Source: Mytilus edulis
Taxonomy: Eukaryota
NCBI RefSeq assembly: GCF_963676685.1
Contig: NC_092352.1
Coordinates: 67,208,001-67,272,000 of the forward strand
Length of the DNA stretch: 64,000 nt
Direction of reading: 5' to 3'
Shown here: positions 17,921-63,891 of the stretch, one piece after another
Layout: each line of letters starts with the position of its first letter
Position numbering within the stretch: position 1 is the first letter of the stretch
Made by a program: the position numbers and the translations under genes
Notes under the pieces: model-generated
What the model saw: the letters and a program-made list of their open reading frames with translations, nothing else
Databases searched by the model: none
Told to the model about the DNA's origin: nothing

Positions 17921-18631
17921 TCAAGGATCGGTTGACGATTCATTTGTTACAAAATGTACATGACACATAATTAAGTCATTCTGATTATCTTGTTCGAAAC
18001 AACTCAGAAAGGTGTTTATCCAAAAAGCCTCGTTGTAATGATGTTCTAAATTTACCGCATGGACGATCTCTATATACGTTGAACTATTTTTGGATGAACT
18101 TGGGTTATCGTACTTATTCGCATTCGAATACATTGTATCACTTTGAATCATGTGTGTTTGGTTTTATCTTTTAGAATTACAAAAAAATATATATCAATAT
18201 GTTTTCACTTAGAATTGATATATTGGATCTTTGCATCGCTATACATATCAGTCATTATTGAAAAGGATATGTTAGGTTATTTTTTGCACCAATCATATTC
18301 TGATCTTCATAAATCGTATCGTTTATTGTCATCAACTATGAGTGCACTGCGTGAGAAATGAACTTAAAAGCTCATCGAAGTCAATCTTGCTTACATGGCT
18401 TCAAATGTTTATTATACATCGAGACTAACTGAAATATTTCAAGTATCAAAATCCGGAACAGACATTTTAGACAAGTCTTCGTCATTATACACCTGATTAA
18501 ACATGAGATCCGCCATTTCTTTTTGATGGCAAAACTAAAGCCACTTTAAACTTAACATTACATGTACCTTCTTATCAACAAACATACAACTGAAAAGACT
18601 ACCACCAGAACTAGTCCTCCCGTAACACTAC
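17921..18631 (-). pseudogene. Relic receptor gene: intact TM exon plus a frameshifted Tyr-rich tail exon
   Basis: Exon 18568-18631 (tatag|GT...AG|gtac, phase 1-2 like the paralogues) encodes GSVTGGLVLVVVFSVVCLLIRR. Downstream fragments TIYEDQ, DMYSDA and MYSNANKYDNP are separated by stops or frameshifts. Confidence 0.55.
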
Positions 18632-18774
18632 CTATAAAAGTTGAACAAAAAATAGAATCAGCAGTTTTATTTTCTAGTGCATAATATCCACTTAATATAA
18701 CAAAACAATGTAACCTCTACTTTAAATGATTAACCTTGTTTATTTTTACTGCTGCTTCTGAAAATAAGAAAATG

Positions 18775-19895
18775 GTGTAACGAAAATACTATTACCGATT
18801 CCTAAAATAATGGCAGCTCCTGTATGAAATATTCCAGGTGGAATGTACACGGAATATAGTAGGAATATTGCTCTAAATTCCTACCAGAAAATAGTGATAT
18901 TCCAGTCAGACAATAGTAAGAATTCACACTAAAAATAGCCGTAAAATTTAAATTAGCAGGAATTTCTTAGTAGGAATATTGTATATTCTACCAGGAAAAT
19001 GCAAATTAGCAGGAATAATTTGGTAGGATAATAATAAACCTAGTAGGAATGTTTCAAAATTCCGACCAGAAAAATATTTTCTGAAAAGAATCTAAAAATA
19101 TACAAAATGTAAGTGTGTATTCACAAATAGACAACTGGGTCAATGATTTAAGTTTGATTCTCAACAACAAAGAACAAAGGAAATTCATGGAATAAATTCA
19201 TTTTAAAAAAATGGACTTTCGAAATGTATAAGGAAAATGCAATATATGCAAGCTAGAAATTGTGTAATACATAAACATGAAGATAAGCCCAAAATATGCC
19301 TAGTTGAAATTAAGAGTTATGAACAAATAATGAGTAACATTATGTACTATTGTTGAATTAATTCATAACTAAATATTTTGGCAGCCAGATAAAAAAATCA
19401 TTTTGAATGTAAAAGAATTACTTTCAGTCAGTTCTTACATTTCTATACTGCAGTTGTGTGACCCTAGCTTGCAGCATTGTGTTCCAACACAACTTTTCAT
19501 TCTTTTCCCCTCCAACTTTTGAATTTGCGAACTGGAACTTGCTTGCATTTAACACTGCAATATGTGTGTTCATAGCAAACGGGAATTCAGTTCAAGATAA
19601 TTCCAGGTTGAAACATTTTCTGGTAGGAATCTTGTACAAGTAGATCTAGTAGGAAAATAAATAATCAAATCAGATTTTCAAAACTATCAAAAATCCATTC
19701 AGACTTTTAAAATTCCACCTAGGTAGTAGGATTTTGATAGTAGGAATATAAAAAAATCCAATCAGAATTTTGTTCATTTTCCATGTCCGCCTACTTTCTA
19801 TATGGAATCTTTGATTCTAGGTAGACTACAGTAACTCTTCATTCCTACTAATGTCTAGGTGGAATCCTACTACATGTACATATTTCGTACGGGTG
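18775..19895. repeat. Degenerate MITE-like element rich in AGGAAT/ATTCCT subrepeats
   Basis: Dense dispersed TAGGAAT/ATTCCTA motifs at both ends; termini uncertain. Confidence 0.4.
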
Positions 19896-20739
19896 ACAGT
19901 TCCAATTGTTTTATGAATTTATTTTCCAAAATTGTAGTATTGTTTTTTTTGTTCAAGTGGTATTCAGACCGAAAAACTACGCGGTGCTGTTTTATGCCTT
20001 CTGACCTTGGAAAAGAGCATCTAGCTTTTTCTGTATAATACTTTCGTCAATCCATTCATCATATTTATGACAAATTGGTTAAAGGCCAGTCTAAAATAGT
20101 CTAGTATGAACTGAATTTGTCACTAACATGCAACTGTAATATAAAACGTAATATAAGGTTTTAAATAAGAGTAGATTTGCTATTATAAAATACAATGAGT
20201 ACATTACAAGATTATCACAAAGATTTTTATTGTTTGTACCATATCCATATTGATTCAAATAAAAAGGCGAACAAAAACAGTCTTGATTAGTTTGAAACAC
20301 GTAACCATTGCATCTCCAAGGTTCCATCAGTTTCAGTTCTCAATCAAAATAACATCAAATCGTTCATAAAGAGCTGTTCTGTGAATAGATGTGCCTTGGA
20401 CGACAATAAATGTTTTAGAAACTTGTGCCTGCACTTTTGTCGCATCAATTCCAACATGATGTGTGTTTCATGCATCTCATATATACAACTTCAAACGGGA
20501 CTCATTGTAAGGTGATAGCAATATCAAAATATTATAATTTTAGAAAAAAAATCAACCAAACAACTATAAAACTAATTCTTTGTTTTTAACTATTTTTTCG
20601 TTGATAGTCTTTTATAACATACCTATTACATACATTGTCTTTTTTCCTTAAGAGTTATTTTGGAAGGTTGTACTGTAAATATAAATTAAACATGAATCGT
20701 CCTGACTTTTTCAGTTTGCAAACTAATTTAATATTAAAA

Positions 20740-22043: not shown

Positions 22044-25000
22044 TCACGTGTTTGTATCACTACGACAGTGGTCATATGTTTGATTGGTGATGTCTTCTTG
22101 ACTGTTGGTAAAAGTTTTATCATACATAAAATCAGCATTTCTATTGTATAAGCCTTGATGTTGATCGGGAAGATCCGCATGTCTTGAAATATCATACGAG
22201 TACTCGTCATCATCAGTAACATGTGAAGCTGTGTCGGAATCCTCTTTTGATATAGGTATCTCATAGTGATTGACACTATCATATTCTATCAAAGCAGTCG
22301 GAGAAGTATTACAGTTATTCACATAGGAATATGGATCCGGAGATAGCTCTGTATCTTTATCTGCTGTTCCGAAAACTGAATGATCAGGAGTACTACCATT
22401 GTGCTTCTGTGGAGTATCTTGTCGATGTGATAAACATGGAATGACAGCATCGGGATTCTCGTATGTTTTATTTGTCACAGTTTTGCAATTCAACTTGTCG
22501 TATGGCGTTCGAGGATGTGAAGCGTCTGCATCCGTATAGAGTGACCGACTGAGGATATTGTCACGGGCTTTTCTGAAATAACCATAATTACTAATTACTT
22601 TACCACTTACAATCACTATGATAAAATTCATATTTGATTTATATTTGTGACAGATTTAATGCTCGAAATGGTTAATAACAAAAGTATTTGTCAGTCACGT
22701 CGACAATCTTCGAAAATCAATATGACAATTTGACCTTCGTATCCCGAGCAGTGTCATTTAAAAATGATAAGCCACGGCAGTAATGTTTTTACTAAAAGTA
22801 AGGGAGGGTTCGGCGCGTCCAAACATGTTTAACATGACACACTCTGTATATGCCTGTTCCAAATCGATCCTCGCGTAGTTCAGTAGTTACCGGTCATTCC
22901 TGTATATCATATTTGTTTCTGGATTTTTTTTGTGTATATAGATCATTCTCTTGTTTAAATTATTAGGCATATGGGACCTTGATTATCTTGCGATGTGGTA
23001 GGCTATTGCCAACGGTTGAGGCATGGTGACCTATTGAAGATAACTTCAATTCATGTGGTATCTGGTCGAGACTTTTCTCATTGGCAAGCGTACCATATCT
23101 TTCAAGAAACATATCTTCGTAGTCTATTTAAATTGAAATTGAAGACATGTAGAAAGATGTCAAGTTGAGTAAGCAGGTGTATGTGACATGATACGTTTTG
23201 TTGAAATCTCAAATCTCAATGAAATATGCCACTCAAGTCATTTTATTTATACACTCCAAATAACTGGAAAATATATAATTACCTTTTGGCAAACCAGAAC
23301 ATTACTACGACAGCCGCAATAATTACGACAACTCCTGTCGTGACTCCAACAGAAACGCCTTTTGGAATGAAAAATGCAGATTTAATATTAATGATTAAAA
23401 TGATTGCCATCTTCTTTAGTATGATCCTTAAATTAAGACATTCATGTTTAGCACGATAGAATTGAGAACGAAAACGGTGAATGTATTAAAGACAATCCAA
23501 CCACATAGAGCAGAAAGCTACCCAAGGCCACCAATGAGTCTTCAATACAGCAAGAAAATCACACATTAGGAGGGGAGTTTTAGCTGGCCACTTGATTATT
23601 TAATCAGTCTAGATCAGCGAAAATAGACGTCATACAAAGACGAAACGAAATGAACCAAATAAATTAAAAGAAAACGCATACAAGACTTTTAAACAAATGT
23701 CAGAGTCTCTTGCGTTGTGACACGCACAAAAATGCAGCGGATTTAAACATGTTTTTGTGAGATCTCAACCCAACCCTACACCCAATGTAGAAGAAACAAT
23801 CACACAACAGTAACGCTTAGTTTACAAAAAGCTCTAGTCCGATGTTTGAAAAGGTAAGATAATAAACTTAGCAAAATGACAATGGTATATAGACAAACAC
23901 AGGACTACTAGCAGCTACGGGTTGACTTTCAGATCAAAATAATACAAACTTAATACACCAACTTAGTTCAAGACCCAAACGTCAAGTCTTTATCTGATTG
24001 TATAGTACTAGTGTAGCTTACCCTTTCTCCGGAAAGAGATCTCACTCTCACAGGACATTTTCCGACACTTCACCGATTATTTTTGCTCCTTATCTAAAGT
24101 GACGTTGATATCAGTTTTAAAGACATTGACACGATCAGGGATTGCAACCCACGGACTACCGCAACATTAGACGTCAGCTAACTTTCTTTTACAAATATGC
24201 AAGAGGTAAATGTTATACGGTAACCCTTCATTTTTCACATCTTATTATTGTATCATTGGCTATCATACAGCGATTTCCATACTCATAAAGAAGAGGAAGA
24301 ACTACAGCAGAAAAATAATCAGTAATTAGATAAGTTAGGTTTGGAATTTTTAACTTAAATAGAAAAAGAGGATTGAATTACAAAGGACTCGTTTGACCGG
24401 ATAATTAAAAAAATTACAGTACCTGCAACATTATATTCACTTTCCATTGAATGGGCATTTCGACTCTCTGTAATTGAATAATTAGTACATGTGACTTAAC
24501 TGAATTTTATACACTTAACATAAATACATATTATATCAAAAATGATATGGTTGATTTTTTATACTTGCTATAAAGGTGTCAAGAACTTCACATAATTCAT
24601 AACGAAATAAGCGGAAAATTTATTGACCTTACATGTGATTCGCTCCCTTATTGGTACATTTTTTTCTTTTCCTGTTTTCTATACTAAAAATAATTCTATG
24701 ATACACACATTTTTGGAGCAATTAAACTGCAGTTTTTTCGGTTGTATTCATTTTAAATTTAAATTTAAGAATTAAAATCCAAACTACATTATTGTTAAAC
24801 TAGCAAGGTAAATTCTAATAATTTAATTTTGGATGTAACGCGTATTCTGATTGGCTGACGTAATTTTGTTATCAGCCCATAGACATAATTTAGTCATGTG
24901 ACCGTGACGTAATCAACGTTTTTCGTGGTTTTCTACGGTTTAAAATGGAATTTAGAATTAAACTATAAGAAATGACTGTAATATTATTTCTGTCTATTCG

Positions 25001-28000
25001 AAATAACATAAAAAATGTGGTGCACACTGTTAAATAACCCGCTACGCGCGTTATTCAGTGTGCACCAAATTTTTTATGTTATTTCTTCATAGACAGAAAA
25101 AATATTACAGTCATTCCTTAAATAATTTAATTTTGAATGTAACGCGTCTTCTGATTGGCTGACGTTATTTTGTTATGAGCCCATAGACATAGTTTAGTCA
25201 TGTGACCGTGACGTCATCAACGTTTTTTCATGGTTTTCTACGGTTTAAAATGAAATTTAGAATTAAATTATAAGAAATGACTGTAATATTTTTTCTGTCT
25301 ATTCGAAATAACACAAAAAATGTGGTGCACACTGTTAAATAATCCGCTACGCGCGTTATTCAGTGTGCACCATTTTTTTTATGTTATTTCTTCATAGACA
25401 GAAAAATATTACAGTCATTCCTTAAATAAATCACAGTGTATGGATTAACATTATAAAACACATCAGAATTATTTTCGTTTATTGTTTTGAACATAAAAAA
25501 TCAGGCTGTTATTTTTTCGTTTGAATTAATTGACATTTGTCATTTCTGGGCGTTTTAAGTTTTGCTCATTGTTGGAGGTCGTACAGTGACCAATAGTTGA
25601 TAATTTCTACGCTATTTGTTTTTGTGTAAAGAGTTGTTTAATTGACAACCCTGGTATATACCTTCTTAAACGCGATCTTCCATGTATAGCCTATTCAATA
25701 TTTTTTACCCAGTTCAACTCGTAGATAAAAATTTCTATAGATAATCGCAACTCAATTGTAAAAACTCGATATTTGCCCACAAGATGCGATACTCATAAGA
25801 CCTAGACTAAGTGTTGATTTCACTGTAAATTATGTTAACACAATTAATTGTCAATGAACTGATATACAATGTACTGTATATGCAAGATGCACATGTGTGG
25901 AAGAATCCGTTATAGTAAATTTTAATTGTGCAGTCCTTAGTGAGATTTATAGTTACCTTTGCAAGTAAACACAATTTTAAAACGCTTCGGTATCTTTATA
26001 CATTCATCTAAAGTAGATAAAGAAGTGTTCCAAACGGGTTCGCATCTTCGTTTTTCATTACAGGATAATTTAACACTTTCTTCTATTCGCCTTCTGCAAG
26101 TATTATAAAGGTCTGGTGTTGAACAAACAAATGTCTCGTGTGTAAGATTAACAGCTAGAACTAAAACTTGTCTACTCCGAAGATTACATAATACAGAAGA
26201 CATATCAGATGGGCACACAGTCTGATCAGGTCTTGAAATATTGACACGGTTTCCAACTGGAAATAAAAACTTTGTTTTATTGGATTGCCAAAATCATACA
26301 AGTGATGGGTTAACCAGATTTAAACTACAACTTTCTACGTCATAAAATGTCTACACCAAGTCGGGAATATGACAGTTATTATCCATACGTTTGATGTTTT
26401 CAATTGATTTCTTACCTCAAAAACATTATGCAGATTTGTAGGATATTCATATTGTCCAATTTGAATAATAATTCTGTTACTAACAATGTATAAGACATTA
26501 GTATCTTTAATTTTAATTATTTTTTTTTTGGGGTGAGGGGGGTCATTTAAGTCTTTGAAGTATTTGTGACTGAAAAGTGGAGCTTATTTTTGGGAATAAA
26601 GACCAGCATTTCTACTTAACCATACTTGTTCAGCAACCTCTATTTGTTATATTAATCAGTTGCGGTCTCATTTTGGTATCGCCTATGTGTGATTGTTTTT
26701 ATAACATTAAGTTGGACTGTCCAATGTTGTGTTAAATTGTATAACTTACGAACACAGTTATATCTAACATGCAACTTCCGAGTTCTTTCCAAATCAGCAT
26801 ATTTTGACGTGTTTATCATTTTGTCTGTTAATTGACACGAGTTTTGACCAATACAAGATAATGTAGGTTCCTGGTTCAATGAGTTGGTTTCTTCTGTTGT
26901 TTCTTTAGGAAGGATACAGCTATCTTCGTCTACGTCAGGAAAGGCAGTTATATTGATATCTTCTATTAGTGTATCCCGAGGGCATTGTAGTTTTACTGTT
27001 GAATATTCGCATAACAGTCTTTCATATACGTTTTCTGTAAAGACACAAAAGCATAATCATATTTTTTAGAAGGTACTGTACATTATATTAAGGGGTCTCA
27101 TTGGGGGGTTTCGATCCCGGATCCCGCTTATTGTTTTGTCAGATTCCCGTATTCCGCTTACACTATTTGCGTAAGCAATTCTCATTTTTTTGTCATTTCC
27201 CGGGTCCTGATAGACCTCATTTCCCGTTTTCACGACACAATAATTTTACTTTCACGTGTCCCTTTTACAAAAAATTGGCAATCCCACGTCACGCTTAGAC
27301 CCCAATTTCATGTGAAATACAAAGGGCAATTAAAAATTAAAACCATCGTGAAAGAATGCATAAAAATGCCAGCTGTGGTACTTCAGATACGCGTTTCATT
27401 TACACGAGTCTCATCAGTGACGCTAGAATCAAAATACTAGTAGTTGAAAGGCCAAGTCAAATAGGAAGTTGAAGGTATAAAAACCGAAACCCTAATACTG
27501 CGCAAGAATAAAATGTGGCGGAAGAAATAAAATCGAGATAATGTATTCCTAAGTGAATGTAATTGTTATCGAAGGAGAATTACGTCTATTCACATTATTT
27601 ATTGTTGCTTTTGATGAGGCTATTGTTGTTAGACGTCCACAAGAACTAAGGCACTAATGACAAATAAGAAGATAAAGGAAGACGTGGTATAAGTGCCAAT
27701 GAGACAACTCTCCATCCAAATAACAAGTTATAAAAGTAAACCATTACAGGTATATGTACGGCCTTGAACACAGAGCCTTGGCTCACACCGAACACGCTAT
27801 AATGGGCCCCAAAATTACTAGTATAAAACCATTCAAACGGAAAAACCAAGTGTTTGCATGCTGATGTTTCTTTGTTCAAGAAAATCTATGTCGATACTTC
27901 CAAACTCAAAGTCTCTCACGTTGACTTTCGGTTTACATTGGACTATAACAAAAATTTTGTCAGTGAAAATAAGCATAACCAATTTCCTAATTTAAACATA

Positions 28001-31000
28001 ATAGGCTAAGCAAAAACCTTGTCTTTATAAATATCACTGGTTTAAAGCAGTCAAATATCTTTAACAGACTGCATATTACGTTTAATGATAACAAAACTGT
28101 TCATCAACCATGAAGAAACACCAGGGTTGTACAAGGTCCTTATGGGGTTATGGTTTTGAAAAGTGTCAAAAGTAGTTAACTTTGGTTCCGAAAAGGCTTG
28201 TTAATAAATCAGATTTAAGAAATTACCAGTGATAAATTTCTAGAATAAAAAGAAAGATATTAAAGGGCAACAATGTTTATTGCTAGTAAAACTGTCCATG
28301 CATCTACATTGAAGGGGAAAGGAAGGAGTTGGTAAGTGGAAATTAAAATTTAAAAAAAACTTTTTGAATTAATATGGGTTTTCACAGAGACCTGGTACGC
28401 AAATATTAAAGAGAGAGAGGAAAATGAAATTTAAATAGCTATCGGCATTATTCGCTTCCCGTTTTGTGAATTGGAATACATATAATTAAATCTGCAATAA
28501 TTGTTTGTTTGATCAATCTTAGGTTATGACAAAAGAGCACACCAGCTAGTCTATAAGATTTTAAAATATTAACATTTAGGCCGGAGTTGTATCGCTTTGT
28601 ACAACATATCTTAATTGTTTACATGTATAAATTATGAAAAGTTTAAAACCACACAATTTTTATATTTTCCTAGGCTCATCCGTTCTTAACATAACTTATA
28701 TTGCCATAAAAAACAACATTAGAAATTATGAATATTTGTGCAAACATTAGAGAAACTAAAACCAATTATTACGAAACACACACAACTATTAAACGTCATC
28801 AGTGAAAAACAAATATAGATACTCTACAGATAAGAAGACAGGCATCAGTTTTACGTATTTTTACATTTTAACAAAATATTCAAACTTTGTTGAATGAATG
28901 AAAGACAAATCAGTACCTAGCTGTATAGACAGGAGACAGAAAATGGGACATCTCTCCACCATAGTCAAATTGAAGCTTATGTTAGCAACTAACGGCCACA
29001 GCTCAACCTTTCACAATGAGCAATCCCAAATGTTGACGGGAGTATAGAAATATGGTCAACCTTTGCATTGGTCAACTTCCGACCGGCTATTGAACACTGG
29101 TCGTATTGGTGTGTTCGTTAGGCTGTGCGGGATGTATATTAATATGAAGCTGCATCCGATCAGAATGGGGATAATAAACCCATTGCCACGTGAAGAGAAA
29201 AAACAACACTAATATTGCATTAATTTTGTGGGGGTTCTTATGCGGCCTGTTGCTTGGCTTAATTTTTGTTCATAACTAATATACTCTTCTTTTCCGCTGG
29301 AATTCCAAATGCTGTCCTTCATCCTGGCTGACCCCCTATTACAGGCCCTTAACTTATTGTATTAGTTTGTAATTTGTTCTCGTCCTGATCAATGCATACA
29401 ATATTTGACAGTCTACGTCAAGCAAACAACATAGCATACCATAAGTCAAAACTTTATGACAACACAATTAACAGAAAACAAACATGACAGATAACAACGA
29501 CTGATTTAGGAAATCTTTTCTAGCCTGGAACAAATAACTTGAAAATAACAGAGACAAAGAACCGATTTAGAATATACGAAGAACATTTAAACGGCAAGCA
29601 GGTGCTGATAACAGATTTTGTAAACGGGTTGGTATGACAGAACAGATTAGGTCTTGTTAATTGTATATACATGTACGACAGGTTATCGAAGTTACTTTTA
29701 TTCATATCATCATTTTGTAACATACTAGCTAGTATATTTAGAAAATTAGAAACCTATCGAAATATATATTCTAAGTTGAGCAAGTCATTTGTTAAAAAAA
29801 AAAAAACTTTGACGCCGATGTTTAAAAAACAATACATGCATGCATATGTTCCAGACCTTATATGAGTATTTGGACCATACGCGTATGGTCATAACCATAT
29901 GGATTTTTGCTTAATTACTATACTCATATGGTACAACCATACGAGTATATACTTCTATGGTTATTAACGGGCCGGACCAAATGAGTATTTTGACCATATA
30001 GGTATTTTTTTCAAATATGCATTACATAGAGATTAATACATGGCCTTTTTCATATAAGCCTGGGTATCATCCCGAGACCCCCATATCAGCCCGAGACGGA
30101 GTCGAGGTGCTGCTACATGTATGGGTCGAGGGATGATATCCAGGCTGATATGGAAAAGGCCATGTATTAATCGCTTTATCATATACTTCCGACAATAGTT
30201 TTATGTAAGGCAAATAAACAAATGCAATGACTAAAACAGTCAAAAACGTTATAAAGAAGATAAATTATGAATCAAATATACTATTATAATTGTCCCAACA
30301 ACAGCATATATTACCTCCATATACTACCTCGGCTCCATATATATGTATGGTAACATTTCCTATATAGGCATTTTGAAACATTGAAAATTTGGAAGAGTTT
30401 TATGATCATTATTACTCCATGTTTGTTGTACTATTAAATGATTAATAATTGTCAATGTAATTTGTTAGCAAGTACTCAACCCCACAAAAGTTCCCTTTTA
30501 AAAATTTGACGTCGTCATAAAAAAATGTCTGACGTCACAATGGAAAGGTTAACAACCGATACCGGAAACACCGGAAGTAACTTGCATGAGAGGCACTATT
30601 AAGGGTTTTGTGCAGGAGATGCACCTGATATGGGTGTACTTCCGCTCATCACACATATGCAAAAGCTATCATATCAATGCTAAGTATATGATAAAAACGT
30701 TTCAATAATACAATAAACTTTATCTTAAAAAAACAACGATGGTGACATGACAATATATTAATTTAAAGTTACGTTAAAATTAAATATTGATGCCAAAGTT
30801 AATTTTTATCGCTTATTACATTCTTGCATGTAGGCGCATTTATGATGGTTGTGCACGATCCTTTCCGGTTATACCCTTTGTTTGCAAGTGAACAGATAGC
30901 CTTCTTTGCAGCTGCGTGCAGTGATGCCAAGGTTTTGGATTATTCCGATGTGTCTACGGTGTTTATGGAGCTCTAGATTTTAAAAATATCGTGATATGAC

Positions 31001-52900: not shown

Positions 52901-55900
52901 TGAATTTGTTGCCTCTTTGCACTACACTAAACAGGTTGACATGCTTGTTACTCTTGTACTTTTCATTCTGATAATGATGCTTAACAACAACAAAAAACGT
53001 CAAAAACAGCTATTATGTCGGCTCATGTATTTGTTGGAATACCAAAATGATTCATCTTGGCGCCATTCTGTGTAATTTATATTCAAATAAGTTTGAGAAA
53101 ATGGTCAAACATATTAAATGTAGTCGATTATGAAAACCTGTAAGTGACACATTTAGCAAAGATAAAAATATAAAAATGTGTTTCATTGTTTATTTGGGAA
53201 AGAACGTTTTTTTGAAATTTTAAGGGTACGCATTTTGGCTTTGATTTTTCTTCTCAGGAGCTTATAGATTTTTTTCTCATAAAGACATTTGCGTGTCGTA
53301 TTAAAACAAATAATATTAATAAAGGTACTAAAATGCAAAATATCACATAGAAATTAAGTTAATTTTGACTGACTTAAGTTTAGGAAATATTTTCAACGGA
53401 TCCTCGTGTGAACAAATAACAATTGTCTGTTACAGTCCTGCCTTTGAACATGCATATTTAGATGATAAAACAATGTTATCTCTCTAAACCTTCAGAGTTA
53501 AAACCTCCATTTGGATATGAAGGTCTTTAAAATACACCCCGTTCAACCATACGGACAATCCCTTTGTAAGGACTTATCTTCGGCCTGAAAGCCTAGCATA
53601 TATGTAAGTACATGTTGAATTATTCAAAACACAATATTTTTTCCTACCCTTGGGTATCAATGCAATTACCGTAGACATATTTTCAATGATCTTCAACGTC
53701 TTATTGTACTTTGCATTCTAACTTTTTTATTCGATGCGTCTAATGTAGACCATACGCCTATTTGGCGTACCAAAGTATTAGGTATTATTAGCCTATTATC
53801 TTTGATGAGTTGTTTTATAACAAAATGCAGGTCTAGTTTTACGGGTTTTGTACAATTATCTATTCTGAGATCTATGTTTTCTTAAATTACAATGTATCCA
53901 TATCATTCATGTTAACTAAACACAAATTTAAACTTATAGTAATTCTTTTAATTATGGTTTAAAACCACAAAGTCTTTGATAAATTTGCATTGTAAAAAAG
54001 AATGTGCAAAACTCATTTTTACTTCAAATAAAGAAATACTTGGCATGAGTAAAGTTTATTTGGTACAGCACTAATATAGACAAAATTGTGCATAACATTT
54101 CAATCCATATAAGGATATAACCATCACTGAAAGTTATAAACCTATTAAATTTTCACTCCATTTTCTCCCTGTTTACAAACTTTAGTGACCGTGTAACCTC
54201 AGGTTTCCAAAATATTCTATTGAAACTACAAATAAAACAAAATGATGCTTTGAAACATATTTTTTTTATATATGTTAGGGATTTTTTTACTGTTATTAAA
54301 TGTAGGATTGATTTTCTACAACTGTCAAATTCAATTAAATATTTTGTTCGACCCTTTGTCGTATGCAACCGGGTGTGAAGTACATGTACTATTATTTGGT
54401 GGTGTTACACCTAATAGTGATTATTATACTTGAATGTTAATATCATGTGAAAATTGAATTGATCATAAAGCTGAAGGTTTATTAATAGGAAAGCATCCAA
54501 AAAGTAGGGTTATTTTATATTCTTCTTGATATTAAGCATTTCCTGCTTAATTTGTGTAGTCGTATCAATACTAAAAAAAAATGTCATAATTGGTCGTCAT
54601 TTTTAGGTCAACCATCAACGAGGCGGCAGGATGGAATTATGGTTTTGACAATGATGAATACTTGTGTCCGTGGTCATACTGATACACTGAACGACCAGAA
54701 CGATTCTCGATAGAGTCCTTTAAACATTTGAAAAGGAAATTATTGTGTTTCAATTACATCTTGGTTAAAGTCATATGAAACAATTGACCGGTGAAAAATT
54801 ATGTTATTCCAATTCTTGAACCAGTGCATACAAACATCATAAACTTAGCCTTCTGTGCACGATTTTATTATTATTTTCGCATAAATTTCTTATAATCGTC
54901 AATTTTTTTTCAATCAGTCATGAAATATGGCAGGTAATTAAAGTTCGTGATTTGAAGCCGATGTTTAACACTTGTCACCTGTTTGTCAACAATCAACAAA
55001 AACAACATTGATATTGAGTACATGTTTAACATGTTCAATCAGATAATAGTTTATTTTAAGGACATCCATGCGTATTGCGATCACCGGATTTTTACGAGAT
55101 GGGTCACACTGAGGTCACTTTGGATGCGGAAAATATGTCGGGGAATTGCTTCAAGGAAGCAATTAAAATAAAGTAAACTTCTTCTAAATATGAACAAATT
55201 AAAGAATGTTCTCCAGAAAAAAGTATATGTACACAAGTTTTATAATGAAAACTATCAATTGAGTTATAAGAAACATATGCATTTTTTTTTTAATTTGAGG
55301 TTTCTTATGACTTTAAGTATGCAGCTTCCTTGCACGTATTAATATCGCATGTGCTATATAAAATAATCTAAACTAGGACAAAATAGAATCATGTTGCTAT
55401 CAAATAAAAAAAAACGGTTAGTTAAAATTAGATCACAGAGAACCTTCACGATGATAATTGTAGAAAATTGATTAAATTTACTAAGGTTTCAACTCCATCG
55501 TGCAAAGTTAATTTCCTGTTCTGGGACTAGTTCGCGCTGCTTTCAAGACACCCATTGGTGTCCTTGATCTGTTTTCGGCTGTTTTATTGGGTTAGGTCTC
55601 TTTATTCGTTCGTCATTCTTTAGTTTTATTAGAGGTAACCTGTGAGATCACGAATCACGTACGAATCACGAACGTACATGTATCACCTACTTTCCTTTCA
55701 CGAATTTGACTATACTTTTTGGACCTTTTGGATTATAGCTCTTCATCTTTTATATAAGCTTTGGATTTCAAATATTTTGGCCACGAGCATCACTGAAGAG
55801 ACATATTTTGTCGAAATGCGCATCTGGTGCAACAAAATTGGTACCGTTGATTTTATTGCCTTATGACACAAAGCGGGATCATTAATTTCAAGTTATGATG

Positions 55901-57737
55901 CCTAAGTGTTCATGATTATCTCGCTTTGATTAAAAGTGCATTTGTTATTGATTGATACGCGTACCGTCTGGTTTATTTCTTTTTAGAATGATCTAAATAA
56001 CAAAAAAGGAGGAGATCCCTTGTACTCCTTGTACTTAAAAACAATACCGAATACTTAACAGAAAACTTCACATATACTATGTGTTCTTTCACAGAATGAA
56101 CGATGAATAACCAAATAAGATATAATAATATAATTTTATAATTTCAGCGTATTAAGTTCCAAATTTTATTTTCGGCGTACTATTTTTTTCCCCGGACCAA
56201 ATATCTAAATTATCACCAGCGATACCGCATACTAAATTGGGGTTAGAGGATGACCCTTTTATTCTATGAGCTGGCGGATTTATTGACCAGGAAAAAAATA
56301 GTAATACATATGCTGGCTTTCACCTTAAAAAAACCTGACCTCTAAATTCTATCATACAGTAAAATGATACATGTGTAATAAATACATAATCTTGCGTGTA
56401 GCAGTTGATTTGTTTTTCTAAATTAATAATCTGACTGACCAAATCTGCCAGACCGGCCCCCTCAGAATCAAATTGTTGCCTCCTAATACCCTCCTCAAAG
56501 ATAGATGATCGATACCCGCTATAACTGCGATATAAAGTTATATAAAGAAAAAGACGGGGAAAAAGGGGGGAATGATATTTTTTTTAATTATTTAATCACT
56601 AACGCTTTCCGTCAACGCCATAACGCTGATGACATTTTTTCCGTCTGGACTTTTTGAGGGAAACTTTGAAACCCAATTTTGACATTTGAAATGTTGCATT
56701 CGAAAAATACACCTTGTAAAACGCTCAATTTGAAGTGAAATTCTAAAATGAATTGTGCGTAAATTGTGCTCAAAATGAGTATAGTATCAGAATAAGGTGA
56801 AAAGTCATGCAGACAACTACTATTACTAGTACATGAATTAAACTAGCCAATTGGCATGATATCAATTTGAATGCATGAAATATCATAAACAAAATACCTG
56901 ATCTACACTCGGAAAACTTGACCATTTCAGTCGAAAAAATAAGATCTGAGCCGGCCATCATATCAACCGTGACTTTAAAGTTAAATAAGATTCAAATTGA
57001 ATACGTATATCATACATAAAAGACCAGGAATGACAATGATAAATAATTGATTACAACAACAAATATTTGAAAGGCTCATTTGACACTCGTTTGCATATCC
57101 TATTTCAATGTTTGTACTGGTAAGTAAAAACGTAATATTGTATGCACATAATCTAAGTGATTCTTACTGATGCATTGTATTTATCATGTCAACCCTAAAC
57201 TATAGAAGGAACTTCGTAACTTATAAACAGCATTAATTCTTGAATATGTGTATTAGGGACTAATGTGTACCTTATTTTGCTTAAGTAATTATTAGTTTAA
57301 AACAACTTTCTCATTAATTTTTATAGTAGCCTTTGCATATTTCAAAGCTTTATGATGATTTGGTATAAAGTGTTTTTATTTTCAATAGCAGTTCTCTCAT
57401 ATCATAATTTTATTATAACATTTGATATTGTCACTTTTGGAATGCACACTTCAGTTACCTTGATTGCTATCAACTGTTTTGTCGAATGTTATGTTCGAGA
57501 GTTCATTTTTTAATGACTTTTTGATTTTGACTGTAAAATATTCATGAAATGCTGATTTGGTGTGATTATAGTAACTTTCTTTATAAGGAAAAATACACGG
57601 TATATGTGAATGTAATTTTCTAGTCGATTTATTAGTAAAAATAAAAAAATAAAAAGCTTACCATGTGATTTGTCTGCCATTGACAATATTGCAGTTACAA
57701 GATACAGTCTTAAAAAGTTGAATGTATTATCGTCCAT
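46993..57737 (-). CDS. Receptor C: paralogue with a truncated second lectin exon (single-domain/secreted isoforms, or incipient pseudogene)
   Basis: Exons: 57662-57737 (alternative 59655-59724), 52597-52875, 50364-(stop at 50123; homology lost after QQKV), 49190-49231/49234 (canonical acceptor CAG>CTG, in-frame AAG 3 nt downstream), 48025-48100 (GVTVGVSVGLITIVGVVVVYMWFVRR) and 46993-47554 (intact tail). Confidence 0.75.
48747..48925 (+). mobile_element. tRNA-derived SINE-like segment ending in (TA)n, part of a ~600 bp repeat (~48300-48925)
   Basis: A box TGGTCGTGTGG and B box GGTTCGAATCC (48823-48833); no complete cloverleaf. Confidence 0.65.
55787..55830 (+). ncRNA. Minimal hammerhead ribozyme, family 3 (intact)
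   Basis: GCATCA CTGAAGA GACA-TATTT-TGTC GAAA TGCGCA TC TGGTGC: all three helices and the core are intact. Confidence 0.78.
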
Positions 57738-57763
57738 TTCGACGGCGTATAACAATGTTCACT

Positions 57764-57780
57764 TTCCTTTACAAGGAAGT
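57764..57780. promoter_or_regulatory. Conserved TTCC..AAGGAAGT (inverted ETS-like pair) just upstream of each receptor ATG
   Basis: Copies at 31550-31564, 39322-39338, 45908-45924, 57764-57780 and 59751-59767. Confidence 0.6.
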
Positions 57781-58414
57781 TACGATTTACCTATTCAGGT
57801 CATAAAAATAATGCTAGTAGTAAAGTAAACAAATTATAAATCAACCAATTATGAAATAAACGTTTAGACATGGATTCGATCTCTGGTATAGAGATTAAAT
57901 GGACTGTAAATCATCCAATACTACAACAATCATATACACATTGTCCTTTTTATACTTCCTCTGGTAAAAGTTAAATTATGTAGGACATGTAGTACGTTCT
58001 ACGTAATTTAAACTTTGCAACAACTTAAAATACATATATCTTTGGTAAGATATATAGTACATGATCGACAACGACAATATACCCGAAATGTATTACCAAT
58101 GACATAGTTCCGACACTCTAACATTTACACCACAGATTTAATTTGATTTTGGTAATGTTTTTTGTGAATTATGTTACATTCTAAATAGTGTACATTCTCT
58201 TAAGTCAACACCGAAGTAATCTTGGAAACTAAAAACACAACCAAAATGCATTGAAATACAACAACAGGTACTTGGTGTATATACACTATCCGTAAATTAT
58301 CATTACATGATAACTTAAATAATAAATTGTGTTTTTGTCAACTAACAGTTATAATTCAGTTGAATAGATATTTTAAAAAGATGCAGCATTAGTCTTGAAA
58401 TCATGACGAAACTC

Positions 58415-60560
58415 CTGCATGTCGGCTCATATGTTTTTGGAATACAAAAATGCTTCATCCTGACGCTATTTTGTGTAATTCATATTCAAATAAGTTTGCG
58501 AAAATGGTCAAACATATTAAATGAAGTCGATTATGAAAACTTTGATTTGATACATTTAGCAAAGATAAAAATATAAACATATGATTCATTGTTTATTGGG
58601 GAAAGAACGGTTTTTGGAAATATTTCGGGTAGGCATTTTGGCTTTGGTTTTCTTCTAAAGAGCATATTCAATTTTTTAGCATAAAGACATCTGCGCGTCG
58701 TTAAAAAACAAATAATTAAGATACAAAAATACACGATATCACATAAAAAATAAGTTAATTTTTATTGACTTCAGATTAGGAAATATTTTCAACGGATCCT
58801 CGTGTGAACAAATAACAATTGTCTGTTACAATCCTGCCTTTGAACATGCTTATTTAGATGAAAATGTGAATAAAACAATCTATATCACTCTTAACCTTTA
58901 AACCACTAAGTCTTTGTAAACTTTGCACAGTAAAAAAAATTATGCAGAACTCAACATTTCTTCAAATAAAAAATACTTGGCAAATTAAATACGTATACCA
59001 TGCATAAAAGACCAGGAATGACAATGAAAAATAATTGATTACAACAACAAATATTTGAAAGATAAAGGCTCATTTGACACTCGTTTGCATATCCTGTTTC
59101 AATGTTTGTACTGGTTAGTACTAACGTAATATTGTATGCACATAATCTAAGTGATTCTTACTGATGTATTGTATATATCATGTCAACCCTAAACTATGGA
59201 AGGAACTTCGGAACTTATAAACAGCATTAATTCCTGAATATGTGTATTTAATAACAAATGTGTACCTTATTTTCAGAAGTAATTGTTAGTTTAAAACAAA
59301 TTTCTCGGTAATTTTTACCGTAGCCTTTGAATATCTCAAAAATTTATGATTTTTTGGCGTAAAGTGTTTTTATTTTCATCAGCATGTCTTTCATATCATC
59401 ATTTTATTATAAAATTTTGTATTTTCACTTTTGCATACTTTAGTCACCTTGTTTGCTATCAACTGTTTTGTCGAATGTCGTTTATAAGAGTGTATTTTTA
59501 ATGACTTTTTAATAAAATAGTTGTTGACTGTAAACTATTTATTAAATGATGATGTGGTGTGATTACAGTAACTTTATATGGAAATATACACGGTATATGT
59601 GAATGTAATTTTCTAGTCGATTTATAAGCGAAAATAGAAAAATCAAAAGCTTACCATGTGATTTGTCTGCAAATGACAATATTGCAAGATACAGTCTTAA
59701 AAAGTTGAATGTATTATCGTCCATTTCGACGGCGTATAACAATGTTCACTTTCCTTTACAAGGAAGTTACGATTTACCTATTTAGGTCATAAAAATAATG
59801 CTAGTAGTAAAGTAAACAAATTATAAATCAACCAATTATGAAATAAACGTTTAGATGCGGATTTGATCTCTCGTATAGAGATGAAATGTCCTTTAATCAT
59901 TCAATGCTTCGATTTTCACATATCCACATTTTCCTGTTCATACTTCTTCTGGGGGAAATTAAACTATGTAGGACATGTAGTACGTTCTACGTTTTTTAAA
60001 CTTTGCAACAACTTGAAATACACATATCTTTGGTAAGATATATAGTACATGATCGATAGCGACAATAAACCCGGAATTTATTACCAGTGACATAATTCCG
60101 ACACTCTAACATTTACACCACAGTTTTAACTTGATTCTGGTAATGTTTTTGTGCATTATGTTACATTGTAAATAGTGTACAAGTCAACACCGAAGTAATC
60201 TTGGAAACTAAACACATAAACAAAATGCATTGAAATACAACAACAGGTATTTGGTGTATATATGTCGTGTACATTTTATGATTTTGGTACAGGTTATTAC
60301 GTGTACAAAAAATTTGTACAAGTAATTACTTGTATGATGGCATCGTACAGGTAATTACTATAACAAAGTTTTTGTACAGGTAATTACTTGTACAAAATAG
60401 TAACATGTACACGACATATACACTTCCAGTAAATAATCATTACATGATAACTTTGATACTAAATTGTGTTTTTGTCAACCAACAGTTATAATTCAGTTGA
60501 TAGATATATTTTAAAAAAACACAGCTTTAGTCTTGAATTCAAATAGACGAAACTCCTGCT
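58415..60560 (-). repeat. Tandem duplication of gene C promoter, exon 1 and part of intron 1
   Basis: 58415-58985 matches ~53015-53490 plus ~53960-54045, and 58990-60560 matches ~57000-58415. It contains an intact second signal-peptide exon, 59655-59724 (MDDNTFNFLRLYLAILSFADKSH). Confidence 0.88.
60263..60416. mobile_element. 154-bp MITE (TGTCGTGTACA...TGTACACGACA) with TSD TATA
   Basis: The empty site is visible in the duplicate copy (GGTGTATATACAC at ~58273-58285). Confidence 0.88.
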
Positions 60561-61856: not shown

Positions 61857-61900
61857 ACGCCAGACGCGCGTTTCGTCTACATAAGACTCATCAGTGACGC
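61857..61900 (-). ncRNA. Minimal hammerhead ribozyme, family 1 (intact)
   Basis: GCGTCA CTGATGA GTC-TTATGTA-GAC GAAA CGCGCG TC TGGCGT. Mutated or partial copies at ~7039-7074, 7341-7381, 27385-27425, 34110-34155, 43555-43595 and 63581-63597. Confidence 0.78.
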
Positions 61901-62810
61901 TCGAATGATAAACAGCATTCGTAGTCAAAGTGAGACAACATAACGGATTGCGGCTTCGACAATTGTAAAAATACATCGCAATCAGAAATGATAAATCATA
62001 AGTCGACGAAAAGCAGACACAACCATGGCTGAAACGAAATGACAAACAGCATCCTACGAAACATATCCAAAGTTATATGTTACAGAAAAATAAAAAATAA
62101 AAAGCAATCCCTCTAAGACTTAATATAATGTTTTCATTCGGAGCTTTCGGTTTATTAGCCTCATTGTTAGCAGCAACACTTAAACAAGGAAAGCATAATT
62201 AATGTGCAAGCAACTAAGGTACAATTTAGTCGATAAGTATACCGCATACCGTCTCTGCTCAAATTTTGAAAAAATAATAAATTTCTGGATGTAACTAAAG
62301 TTACGAAGCCGATTTAAGAACAAACTTAGTACCATTTATATAAATTTCGATTGATTAAAACAGTTCAACGTAGTCATTGAATACGGGTTTTTTTTTATTG
62401 AGAGAACACAATCTGTATATCAGAACGTAAAGGCAAGCTGTAACAAATATGGTTATTCTATGTTATAAGCACATGTTTACGTCGAAAGATATAAAATATA
62501 CATTTTCGTATGTCTGATCAATGACATAGAATTATGGTGTAATATGAGTGTCAATGACACAACATACCACCCAAGTCACACGTTACTTTGGGAAGGTCTG
62601 CAATCCAAACAATATAAAGGTCTATTGAAATTGATGTCCTGCTGTTTATCAGGGCAGATTTTCCACAAAACATCTAATTGGTCTTTATTGAATGCAACAT
62701 TTTTATTTCGGATTCATTTTCTAAATTATCCATTTCATTTTCATTATGATGGTTTGCCATTCCGTATGCAGCGAATTATGATGCTGTACAGGACGGTCCG
62801 TTCCGTTTTG

Positions 62811-63891
62811 CTAAAGAACTGTAAAATAATTAGCAGAATTTGATAATGAACTCTGTGTATGTTCTCTGATTCCAATTCCAATGTTTGATTCTACGTGATT
62901 GACTGTTTGGTCCTCATTTTCCTTTTTAGATTTATTTTGTTGGGTTACTGGACAAGGAATAATGTATTCATTTTCCATTTCTTTGTTGTTTATGTCTGGT
63001 TGATCTCGACTGGGTTGTTTCCTAAAATCTTGCTTTAATTCGTCATAGCTTCTTGATTCTTGATCTGTTGTCAATATCTCATAGTTGGAGTCCGAAGGAA
63101 TTGCAGTGTTTTTATTTCCAATGCTATATTTGTTTTCATCTCGTTTATTAGTTGTGTTTTGTTCGTCATCTGACACTTTTCTACAGTAAAACAAAACAAA
63201 TGATTCAAGTACTCTATCAATAAAATACAATGGATGATTCACTAGGTTAAAAATAGGATAACAAATTGGGAAGTACTGCAAGAAAATGACTTTAGTCAAA
63301 TCTAAGGCATGGCAATACTTACTCTTTCTCTATCCCTTCCTCAGCTATAATGTTATGTGAAGATAATAGAATAGTCGTTAATGCTTATAATGGTAAGGGA
63401 TTTACAAAATTATCTTTTACAAATGACGTTACCTTCTAACAAACAGTATATACACCACAATGACGCCGACAATTGTAATAAGTCCAACTGTAACACCTAC
63501 TGCTACACCTGAATAAAATTGAAATCAAGTTAATAAATAAACTCATCATAAATACCAGGACGAAATTTTTTATATACGATACGCCAGACGCGCGTTCATT
63601 GAATGTTAGCTTCATTCTATGTTATCCATAATGATGGTATCTATTGATAATAATTCTAGTAATAATTTCACCGTTAACATGTTTAAATCACAAAACCAAT
63701 CCGCATCGTCAAAGATATGCTAAGAAATAGTTGAATGTATAAAAGAAAATTAATACACAAATGTTATTTTCTCTTTAAAAGAAATGTTTGTTTGTTTTAT
63801 TCATCTGACAAAATCTGTTTAATGATCATGGCAGAGTTATACTTACTTACTACATTTGTTTCCTCTGATAACGAAACATCCGGAGAAATTG
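62811..63891 (-). CDS. Receptor D (3' part; 5' exons outside the window) with an ITAM-bearing, shortened tail
   Basis: Exons: 63847-63891 (45-nt stalk), 63433-63508 (76-nt TM, VAVGVTVGLITIVGVIVVYILFVRR) and 62811-63180 (tail with DSNYEILTTDQESRSYDEL, ending ANYFTVL*). Confidence 0.82.

Follow-up and report, generated by a model that had tools for sequence, protein, structure and literature searches.

A tandem cluster of Mytilus-specific type-I membrane protein genes in Mytilus edulis, with two diverged SUEL-lectin domains and a tyrosine-rich tail

EVA-1 of C. elegans and EVA1C of vertebrates are type-I membrane proteins of ~400-450 aa, composed of two tandem SUEL domains, a single transmembrane (TM) segment and a cytoplasmic tail, features that are shared by the genes described here. 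The ectodomain of the latter also resembles the rhamnose-binding (RBL)/SUEL lectins, such as CSL3, SUL-I and SML, and the lectin domain of latrophilin/LAT-1, in domain size, in the coding of each domain by one exon and in a cysteine framework. In RBLs this framework is paired as C1-C3, C2-C8, C4-C7 and C5-C6, C4 being the partner of C7. In genomic organization the locus shares with the LILR/KIR, SIGLEC and NK-complex C-type lectin clusters of vertebrates its tandem arrangement, gene births and deaths, exon-level recombination, adjacent long- and short-tail members and the presence of an ITAM consensus in one tail type. Furthermore, the engulfment receptors of the Draper/CED-1/MEGF10 type are invertebrate type-I proteins that carry an ITAM in their own tail, where it is read by a Syk-family kinase (Shark).

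We analysed a window of 64,000 nucleotides from Mytilus edulis (NC_092352.1, 67,208,001 to 67,272,000; positions below are counted from its first letter). Its minus strand holds genes A (22044-31543), B (32779-39296) and C (46993-57737) and the 3' half of gene D (62811-63891), which are real and far above chance, exon-to-exon matches between paralogues having E values of 1e-10 to 1e-50. A fifth gene, E, continues the array beyond the window. The cluster thus comprises at least five paralogous, Mytilus-specific genes (A to E) for type-I membrane proteins, whose extracellular part consists of two diverged SUEL-lectin domains and whose cytoplasmic tail is rich in tyrosine. A sequence-only reading of this DNA had proposed a type-I topology for A-D and a shared plan of signal exon, two phase-1 Cys-rich exons, stalk, TM and tail, and the topology was supported and the plan confirmed in exon lengths, phases and splice sites. 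All five genes have six exons (signal, cys1, cys2, stalk, TM and a single tail exon). The signal exon measures 70 nt in A and B, 76 nt in C and E and 67 nt in D; cys1 exons span 267-285 nt and cys2 exons 291-309 nt, both in phase 1-1, and the stalk (45 nt) and TM (76 nt) exons have the same length in 5/5 genes. Splice sites are AG/GT except for the stalk acceptor of gene C, and in A, B, D and E the frames are open and the splice sites intact across all six exons. Gene models B and D match M. edulis RefSeq, and A matches M. galloprovincialis RefSeq. Additionally, a 1,740-nt Logan contig (P0120) encodes 375 contiguous residues that begin in cys1, cross cys2, stalk and TM and reach the tail; only a transcript that was spliced from a gene of this family could give such an uninterrupted order. 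The RefSeq models and this one transcript-like contig suggest that A to E may be expressed in M. edulis. At least six copies had been counted; A, B, C, D and a dead D-type tail stand, but a supposed relic at 17921-18151 had no support from BLAST, the tail HMM or the Cys-domain HMMs, so that the array truly begins at ~22044. The other end given for it, 63891, falls precisely on the base that opens the gene D stalk exon.

Gene A opens with a signal-peptide exon of 70 nt (31474-31543; ATG, hydrophobic core and GT donor, ending in phase 1), which shares 100% identity with residues 1-23 of P0167, a RefSeq model from M. galloprovincialis. It is followed by a diverged SUEL-like cys1 exon of 285 nt (26750-27034; phase 1-1, AG/GT, cys1 HMM E 1e-42, 94% identity to P0167), a SUEL-like cys2 exon of 300 nt (25957-26256; phase 1-1, AG/GT, Pfam SUEL_Lectin E 2.2e-4), a 45-nt stalk exon (24423-24467; AG/GT) and a 76-nt TM exon (23283-23358; phase 1 to 2, repeat family D8). 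The tail exon, with acceptor and stop codon (22044-22572), encodes a tail of the long type whose distal multi-tyrosine motif has diverged and which is 89% identical to P0167; per exon, identity to this model ranges from 89 to 100%. Gene B corresponds exon by exon to RefSeq XP_071133303.1 (P0027, 379 aa). Its 70-nt signal exon (39227-39296) is identical to residues 1-23 of that protein, and SUEL-like exons for cys1 (36987-37265; 279 nt, 6/8 framework Cys, assigned from ESM Atlas and an AF2 model) and cys2 (36170-36460; 291 nt, eight Cys, assigned from hhalign and ESM Atlas) precede the stalk exon (35266-35310; 45 nt), the TM exon (34797-34872; 76 nt) and a long-type tail exon with stop codon (32779-33157), identical to the P0027 tail.

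Gene C, a mosaic, is disrupted in this haplotype. Its 76-nt signal exon (57662-57737) shares 92% identity with that of gene E, its 279-nt cys1 exon (52597-52875) 89% with that of gene D, and its long-type tail exon with stop codon (46993-47554) 76% with the gene E tail. The cys2 exon (50177-50364) is truncated: only the first 62 codons are still homologous, no donor follows, and the cys2 HMM covers positions 2-61 only. The 45-nt stalk exon (49190-49234) has the acceptor CTG, not CAG, and a 76-nt TM exon lies at 48025-48100. An intact C-type gene (P0119) is present in M. trossulus. Upstream, a duplicate 70-nt gene C signal exon (59655-59724, minus strand) lies within a 2-kb tandem duplication (56993-58283 / 58981-60262). 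The D-type tail relic on the minus strand at 44590-45205 has several in-frame stops and a Phe for the second Tyr of its ITAM, and a dead cys1 exon is found just beyond the window edge.

Gene D corresponds exon by exon to RefSeq model P0125 (381 aa). Within the window are its 45-nt stalk exon (63847-63891), identical to P0125, its 76-nt TM exon (63433-63508) and a short tail exon (62811-63180) that contains the ITAM consensus YxxL-x8-YxxL and ends where P0125 ends; the cys2, cys1 and signal exons are located outside it (G000:C9:67275292-67283336). The stop follows the ITAM, at a point where C and E read through, and further downstream a frameshift disrupts the distal motif, whose tyrosines are gone. 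Tails are short in D and of the long multi-tyrosine type in A, B, C and E.

The sequence-only reading had recognized a SUEL/Gal_Lectin cysteine pattern and fold in both Cys-rich domains, and this was borne out by profiles, ESM Atlas, Foldseek and the Cys framework. As judged from these comparisons and models, cys1 and cys2 are strongly diverged SUEL/RBL folds. Their Cys columns line up with those of bona fide M. edulis SUEL exons: among 27 aligned domains, including 18 such exons, four columns are invariant and one nearly so. The eight framework positions are all kept in cys2, and cys1 keeps six, lacking exactly C4 and C7. The proposed search with PF02140 gave a divided result, since 8/15 family proteins match (E<=0.1; best E 5.4e-6) but the window exons score below the gathering threshold (21.9 bits for A cys2 and 13.8 bits for B cys1, against 31.4) and are absent from the 127 genomic matches at E<=0.01. 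The orthologues P0120, P0122, P0126 and P0167 have a precomputed PF02140 match. With hhalign, gene B cys2 aligned to true SUEL exons of M. edulis (probability 86%, E 4.8e-6); cys1 found no support in this comparison. The sole PDB profile matches are SUEL domains, 5iaz for cys1 and 8suf for cys2. Neighbours of both domains in ESM Atlas are SUEL lectins, EVA1C and latrophilin (TM by query 0.59-0.75), and those of gene B cys1 are all SUEL. An AF2 model of cys1, of moderate confidence (pLDDT 67), had SUEL/RBL domains as all of its 14 best PDB matches in Foldseek (TMq 0.55-0.67), and is partly circular because true SUEL domains were in its input alignment; the whole-protein model is poor (pLDDT 39).

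Compared with RBL/SUEL lectins and the latrophilin/LAT-1 lectin domain, which are the best PDB fold matches, the array domains lack the YGR sugar-binding motif in both cys1 and cys2 when aligned with M. edulis SUEL exons. Moreover, the DPC motif is changed to D-D/E-C in cys2 and is missing in cys1, and KYL is changed to K-L/F-x. The SUEL fold is present, yet rhamnose or galactose may not be bound. Unlike the secreted lectins the array proteins are anchored in the membrane, and unlike latrophilin they are not GPCRs; identity with latrophilin/ADGRL was rejected on the basis of a single TM exon and no match to 7tm_2, GPS or OLF. The sequence-only reading had recognized no named family with this architecture, but one exists: EVA-1/EVA1C also has a pair of SUEL domains and then a single TM, the layout found in the exon models and in P0027, P0125 and P0167, and EVA1C ranks with the closest structural neighbours of cys1 and cys2. 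Membership in that family was nevertheless rejected: FAM176 (PF14851) had no match in the tails or whole family proteins at E<=0.1-1, and the best genomic matches lie elsewhere, one of them adjoining two SUEL exons on chromosome C10 as a separate candidate EVA1C orthologue. The array genes also differ from EVA-1/EVA1C in that they are confined to one genus, stand in tandem copies and are mosaics.

Three processes shape the cluster: duplication, recombination of exons among paralogues, and decay. The births, deaths and partial duplications that had been suggested are visible in mosaic gene C, the dead tail, the dead cys1 exon and the duplicate signal exon. A conserved tail beneath a diverging ectodomain, as previously proposed, holds only for the final 48 residues in the tails of B, C and E (77-85% identity, against 42-66% in the ectodomain); it does not hold for gene A and its orthologues, in which both parts are equally diverged, or for gene D, with its different, shortened tail. 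The suggested comparison of dN/dS between ectodomain and tail was made per exon, but values stayed under 1 in all of the substantial exons (cys1, cys2, TM and tail; 0.14-0.69 in pairs involving intact genes) and above 1 in just two pairs of the 14-codon stalk, giving no whole-exon sign of positive selection in the ectodomain. Between species, gene A agrees fully with the M. galloprovincialis RefSeq model in the signal exon and at 89-94% in each of the other exons; with a second M. galloprovincialis assembly it shares only 81-86% identity, and the best M. galloprovincialis match of gene B reaches 61-78%. Ectodomain and tail cassettes have recombined across haplotypes and species, as in P0118, where a D-type tail lies under a B-like ectodomain.

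The cytoplasmic tail matches no Pfam family and no solved structure. Its profile shows that the cluster is one branch of a far larger uncharacterized, Mytilus-only receptor family, in which many ectodomains are joined to a common TM-tail cassette. Members were defined by the C-terminal tail motif (profile A1), encoded by a single exon after a phase 1-to-2 TM exon of ~76 nt. The profile matches 115 representative protein clusters, at the C-terminal end in nearly all, and wherever the source name could be read, as it could for approximately 75 matches, it was Mytilus. Searching the genome with the tail gave 58 matches, all on C9 or three small unplaced contigs; at least 55 tail exons share the cassette, and those that are placed lie on the same chromosome as the array. 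At 20 other superfamily loci the TM exon has the same phase in 18 and is exactly 76 nt long in 14. Tail HMM scores are 117 bits for B, 116.5 for C, 115 for E and 62 for A; gene D, having lost the distal motif, lacks the superfamily tail motif and keeps the 76-nt TM exon. Among 53 longer tail-sharing members, Pfam domains were MAM (12), SRCR (6), WSC (5), SUEL (2) and Kringle (1), the SUEL ectodomains joined to the cassette at other loci being of the canonical kind. This superfamily with other ectodomains had been overlooked in the sequence-only reading.

Tyrosine signalling by the tails is plausible from their motifs. A canonical ITAM (YxxL/I-x6-8-YxxL/I) is present in the gene D tail and absent from those of A, B, C and E, and its consensus is kept in 5/5 tails of the D type, drawn from M. 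edulis, M. galloprovincialis and M. californianus. No conserved ITIM ((I/V/L/S)xYxx(I/V/L)) was found: A and D have single matches, that of A being apparently unconserved, B, C and E have none, and 3/20 other superfamily tails match. The tails of A, B, C and E contain no PTB motif. Unlike vertebrate paired receptors, the array proteins are built on the SUEL fold and not on Ig or C-type lectin domains. Their ITAM sits in the tail of the receptor itself, and the TM carries no charged residue that would engage an adaptor; they lack a conserved ITIM, and the multi-tyrosine motif of the long tail is specific to the family, no counterpart being known. Draper/CED-1/MEGF10 provide a precedent for the mechanism proposed for D-type tails, but their EGF-repeat ectodomain and NPxY are absent from the array proteins and there is no sequence similarity.

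We consider it somewhat better than an even bet that these are Mytilus-specific tandem SUEL-fold receptors whose tails signal by tyrosine phosphorylation. The ectodomain would bind an extracellular ligand, which, as YGR is missing, may be a protein, or else a glycan of an unusual kind, instead of rhamnose or galactose. Phosphorylation of conserved tail tyrosines in acidic contexts would then relay the signal by recruiting SH2-type adaptors or kinases. In gene D the canonical ITAM would recruit a tandem-SH2 kinase of Syk/Shark type, and A, B, C and E would signal through the family-specific distal four-tyrosine motif of their long tails. That the receptors might serve immune or non-self recognition can reasonably be guessed from their ectodomain types and birth-and-death evolution.

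The tail tyrosines could alternatively be sorting signals and not phosphorylation sites. The proteins would then be endocytic or scavenger receptors that capture ligand with the ectodomain and are internalized mainly through YxxPhi-type signals, a rather unlikely reading. It draws on the SRCR, MAM, WSC, Kringle and lectin ectodomains of the superfamily, typical of scavenger and clearance receptors, and on YxxPhi matches in 20/20 other superfamily tails and in A, C, D and E. However, gene B has no YxxPhi, the best-conserved tyrosines stand in Y-D-x-S/H and Y-S/N-R/H contexts, which differ from YxxPhi, and most tail tyrosines have an acidic residue <=3 positions upstream, which suits kinase substrates; the full ITAM of D-type tails kept across species also speaks against it. 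The shared layout and structural proximity to EVA1C and latrophilin, together with a missing YGR that fits protein binding, could instead indicate EVA-1/EVA1C-like guidance or adhesion co-receptors in development, with the SUEL pair binding a Slit-like or teneurin-like partner. We regard this as improbable for a one-genus, tandem, mosaic and partly decayed family, unlike a conserved developmental gene, in which no protein gave a FAM176 match and apart from which a candidate EVA1C orthologue lies on C10.

The unusually divergent congeneric 'orthologues' of A and B and the cassettes shuffled between haplotypes and species (P0118, P0119) would suit a polymorphic allorecognition-type locus for self/non-self or gamete recognition in place of pathogen sensing; dN/dS below 1 argues against such a role, and part of the divergence could stem from assembly errors or paralogy, so that we give it a low probability. 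It is highly improbable that the array is mostly non-functional, consisting of decaying duplicates modelled by gene predictors. Decay is evident in the truncated cys2 and lost stalk acceptor of gene C, the dead tail and cys1 exon, the distal tail of gene D and gene E cys2, where Tyr replaces one framework Cys. Nevertheless, A, B, D and E keep open frames and intact splice sites over six exons each, dN/dS is well under 1, the subfamily has a transcript-like contig, and the short tail with ITAM of gene D is kept in M. californianus and M. galloprovincialis.

The family had been put forward as a candidate undescribed one. A literature search found no published description, but the proteins are already in RefSeq/UniProt, labelled 'uncharacterized' or 'SUEL-type lectin domain-containing protein', the latter being the UniProt title of several orthologues.

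The window lies within a 1.37-Gb genome (G000, chromosome C9, 67208001-67272000) and has a GC content of about 32% across its whole length. Repeat finding combined with tblastn of candidate exons located four co-oriented minus-strand copies of a transmembrane (TM) exon (repeat family D8) in the window, and tblastn against the window showed that they are accompanied by Cys-rich and tail exons (E down to 1e-30 and below), which bears out the tandem minus-strand array proposed in the sequence-only reading. Mapping of exons by their coordinates was extended 40 kb past the window and yielded five genes in total. Genes A (22044-31543) and B (32779-39296) are intact, gene C (46993-57737) is broken, gene D (62811 to about 75336) contributes only its tail, TM and stalk exons to the window, and gene E lies wholly outside it, with intact frames. 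All five are composed of a signal exon that measures 67-76 nt and ends in phase 1, two Cys-rich exons of phase 1-1, namely cys1 (267-285 nt) and cys2 (291-309 nt), a stalk exon of 45 nt, a TM exon of 76 nt running from phase 1 to 2, and one tail exon. Splice sites are AG/GT throughout, with the sole exception of the stalk acceptor of gene C (CTG), and the TM helix of every gene is free of charged residues. The first base of the gene D stalk exon, 63891, coincides with the end originally proposed for the array. The proposed start at 17921 found no support: the ORF at 17921-18151, taken for a relic, matched neither tails nor Cys domains by tblastn/BLAST or HMMs and was rejected. A weak SUEL-like ORF at 11401-11733 (HMM E 2.3, without a Pfam match) was left uncounted, and the signal exon initially picked for gene B (37881-37950) was dropped, because RefSeq uses 39227-39296, which is conserved among the paralogues.

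The proteins of the cluster are already present in databases, as uncharacterised entries. Exons were searched singly, while the joined products of genes B, D and A were represented by P0027, P0125 and P0167 from the databases. The 379-aa product of gene B corresponds exon for exon to P0027, which is letter for letter XP_071133303.1, 'uncharacterized protein [Mytilus edulis]', and the 381-aa product of gene D corresponds in the same manner to the M. edulis RefSeq protein P0125. Gene A shares 89-100% identity per exon, with equal boundaries, with P0167 (435 aa) of M. galloprovincialis, and these three agreements support the splice models of B, D and A. A-type orthologues of 430-437 aa occur in M. 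coruscus and M. californianus; the M. californianus genes are numbered consecutively (LOC127710065, 127710066 and 127710067), which suggests a syntenic cluster. A further family member, P0120, comes from a Logan contig of 1,740 nt that encodes 375 contiguous residues spanning cys1, cys2, stalk, TM and tail; since these residues run unbroken from cys1 to tail, the contig represents a spliced transcript. Gene C is broken in this haplotype: homology in cys2 ends after 62 codons, the donor is absent and the stalk acceptor is lost. The M. trossulus protein P0119 (447 aa) is the product of an intact gene with the composition of gene C.

Assignment of both Cys-rich domains to the SUEL/rhamnose-binding-lectin (RBL) fold, as first suggested from the sequence, is supported by several lines of evidence, none of them strong alone. 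The Pfam SUEL_Lectin model (PF02140, HMMER) matched gene A cys2 (E 2.2e-4) and gene B cys1 (E 0.079), both under the gathering score, and was found in 8 of 15 family proteins at E<=0.1, with a best value of 5.4e-6; several orthologues carry a precomputed PF02140 match or the automatic UniProt name 'SUEL-type lectin domain-containing protein'. Searched against the PDB, each profile returned a single match, in both cases a SUEL domain and at E 0.1: the C-terminal domain of rice beta-galactosidase for cys1 and the lectin domain of LAT-1 for cys2. Profile-profile comparison (hhalign) with 18 genuine SUEL exons of the M. edulis genome aligned the cys2 profile, built from 16 sequences, over 66 of 79 columns (probability 86%, E 4.8e-6), while cys1 matched neither the SUEL exons nor cys2 by this method. 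With ESM Atlas features and ESM models, both domains adjoin SUEL lectins, EVA1C and latrophilins (TM-score by query 0.59-0.75). The whole-protein AF2 model of P0027, computed with 15 homologues, was unusable (pLDDT 39). The AF2 model of cys1 (pLDDT 67) found SUEL/RBL structures in all of its best 14 PDB matches (TMq 0.55-0.67), and is supportive only, because true SUEL domains were in its alignment.

Four Cys columns are invariant in the joint alignment. All eight framework cysteines are retained in cys2, and precisely two of them, the fourth and the seventh, are missing from cys1. As these two residues are bonded to each other in the published RBL disulphide map, cys1 would have lost one disulphide as a unit. 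The YGR motif is absent from both domains, DPC is altered in cys2 and missing in cys1, and KYL is altered. Judging from these sequences, the SUEL fold does not by itself warrant the assumption that rhamnose or galactose is bound. The lectin domains of latrophilin and EVA-1 bind protein ligands, and by analogy the ligand here may also be a protein. The cys1 and cys2 exon types are confined to this cluster in the M. edulis genome, which contains at least 127 canonical SUEL exons, mostly with one domain per exon. In this very large expansion, C1 (at about 8.0 Mb), C3 (at 34.2 and 73.1-73.6 Mb) and C8 (at 46.7-47.2 Mb) harbour large tandem arrays.

Two types of tail coexist in the cluster. In genes A, B, C and E the tail is long and includes a distal multi-tyrosine motif; with the tail HMM, B, C and E score 115-117 bits and A scores 62 bits. 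The tail of gene D ends where those of C and E continue, and the DNA downstream is a frameshifted remnant from which the tyrosines have gone; RefSeq P0125 stops at the same point, and M. californianus has a similarly short D-type tail. The D tail conforms to the canonical ITAM consensus, YxxL-x8-YxxL, which is kept in each of the five D-type tails, drawn from three species. Several other branches of the superfamily described below likewise have motifs of the ITAM consensus in the proximal tail. A motif scan of the A, B, C and E tails detected neither an ITAM nor an NPxY motif, nor any conserved ITIM; the gene A tail has one match to the ITIM pattern, whose conservation is not established. From the ITAM of gene D and the conserved tyrosines, it may reasonably be inferred that these tails signal through tyrosine.

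Translations of the tail exons had no credible Pfam match, and the tail profile found no relative among solved structures in the PDB. Within the genome, the gene B tail gave 36 matches, nearly all on C9. Alignment of the last 110 residues of the tails from 20 of these loci revealed a sharply conserved motif in which tyrosine, in acidic contexts, accounts for three of five invariant columns; a juxtamembrane D-Y-I/T-G-x-Q motif is also conserved. The resulting profile made 58 genome matches, every one of which falls either in the 36.7-85.8 Mb interval of C9 or on one of three small unplaced contigs. Among 1.84 billion proteins it recovered 115 representative clusters, with the match C-terminal in nearly all, and the approximately 75 hits with a readable species name all come from five Mytilus species. 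Among 53 longer members, MAM domains occur in 12, SRCR in 6, WSC in 5, SUEL in 2 and Kringle in 1. In 18 of 20 other loci the tail exon is preceded, at a distance of 0.3-3.3 kb, by a TM exon of the same phase, which measures exactly 76 nt in 14 of them. Because this TM-plus-tail cassette is common to differing ectodomains, the cluster is one branch of a superfamily that is restricted to the genus and was assembled by joining differing ectodomain exons to a single cassette.

Elsewhere on C9, superfamily tail exons at three loci (37250513-37275430, 83953790-83967357 and 85800451-85808099) are preceded on the same strand, at a distance of 7-25 kb, by SUEL exons of canonical or near-canonical type (Pfam 58-68 bits at 37.25 and 85.8 Mb; 29.3 bits, under the cut-off, at 83.97 Mb). 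As such exons precede tails, SUEL-plus-tail genes with less diverged lectin domains seem to exist there. At C9 72312001-72322000, part of the tyrosine motif occurs in three to four tandem copies within one tail exon of 308 aa (8910-9833 of that locus), so the motif can be amplified.

The cluster evolves by birth and death with exon-level recombination. Births, deaths and partial duplications had been claimed, and all can be recognised: a dead D-type tail with stops in frame (44590-45205), a second signal exon produced by a 2-kb tandem duplication (59655-59724), a partial copy of cys1 outside the window, and genes that are mosaics. Gene C is D-like in cys1 and cys2 (89% and 84%; dS 0.11-0.16) and E-like in its signal exon and tail (92% and 76%; dS 0.07-0.18), with dS of 0.5-1.9 for the remaining exon combinations. 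The database protein P0118, which joins a B-like ectodomain to a D-type TM and tail, exemplifies the recombination of cassettes across assemblies and species. Strong ectodomain divergence against a conserved tail had also been expected, and this stands only in part. In B, C and E conservation is highest over the final 48 residues of the tail (77-85%) and lowest in cys2 (42-57%), whereas gene A and its orthologues show a similar degree of divergence in ectodomain and tail. Pairwise Nei-Gojobori estimates of dN/dS per exon are below 1 in all substantial exons of ectodomain and tail (cys1 0.15-0.48, cys2 0.18-0.69, whole tail 0.25-0.69) and therefore give no whole-exon sign of positive selection; values above 1 occur only in two pairs of the 14-codon stalk exon.

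The sequence-only reading recognised no named family with this architecture. EVA-1/EVA1C comes nearest, with two SUEL domains and one TM, but its defining FAM176 region is absent from the cluster genes. On C10, at 43163695-43177217, two SUEL exons are followed on the same strand by a FAM176 (PF14851) match; this separate candidate is likely the true EVA1C orthologue of M. edulis. Vertebrate paired-receptor clusters resemble the Mytilus cluster in organisation, with long-tail and ITAM-bearing short-tail members side by side, but differ from it in fold and tail motifs. No published description of the family or of its tail was found in the literature searched. What is new is the genus-specific tail superfamily, its common TM-plus-tail cassette, its restriction to a single chromosome and the two tail types within the cluster.

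Bivalves depend on expanded families of innate recognition molecules, and those described are mostly secreted (C1q, FREPs, lectins); to our knowledge, little has been established about how cell-surface recognition is coupled to signalling in these animals. The locus and its superfamily provide a defined and testable set of membrane receptors with conserved tyrosines in a common tail, some with a canonical ITAM, and make it possible to ask whether Syk/SH2-type immunoreceptor signalling proceeds from lineage-specific receptors in molluscs. They also offer a clean case of exon shuffling and birth-and-death within one genus and on one chromosome, and a candidate for presence-absence variation, which is known in mussel genomes. 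An immune role for the cluster is a guess. On a wider and rather doubtful reading, at least 55 loci on one chromosome might form a Mytilus-only receptor complex, with the window representing one arm, in which phase-1 exons for unrelated ectodomain folds (MAM, SRCR, WSC, Kringle, SUEL) were shuffled onto the 76-nt TM and tail cassette, the tail carrying an ITAM-like proximal motif, an undescribed distal four-tyrosine motif, or both. Such a complex would be an invertebrate counterpart of the leukocyte-receptor and NK complexes of vertebrates, serving pathogen or non-self recognition and possibly relevant to mussel transmissible cancer.

The remaining features of the window concern other sequences. 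Two plus-strand ORFs unrelated to the array, one in which a coiled coil comes after a signal-like start, with only weak coiled-coil Pfam matches (11955-12365), the other a Cys-rich C-terminal ORF of 135 aa without a Pfam match (16668-17075), may be two exons of one gene for a secreted coiled-coil protein. A tandem duplication of about 1.7 kb at 1900-4900 (repeat families D1-D3, D18 and D19) has copies 95-99% identical and contains a 26-nt minisatellite. At 6900-7376, a 100-N gap (7075-7174) is flanked by a pair of identical direct repeats (175 nt each, at a spacing of 302 nt), and hence lies inside a tandem repeat. Finally, the dispersed repeat D5 (about 100-145 nt), found in introns and downstream of tail exons at 32391-32491, 34564-34664, 41993-42093 and 45695-45795, resembles a small mobile element that is common in this region.
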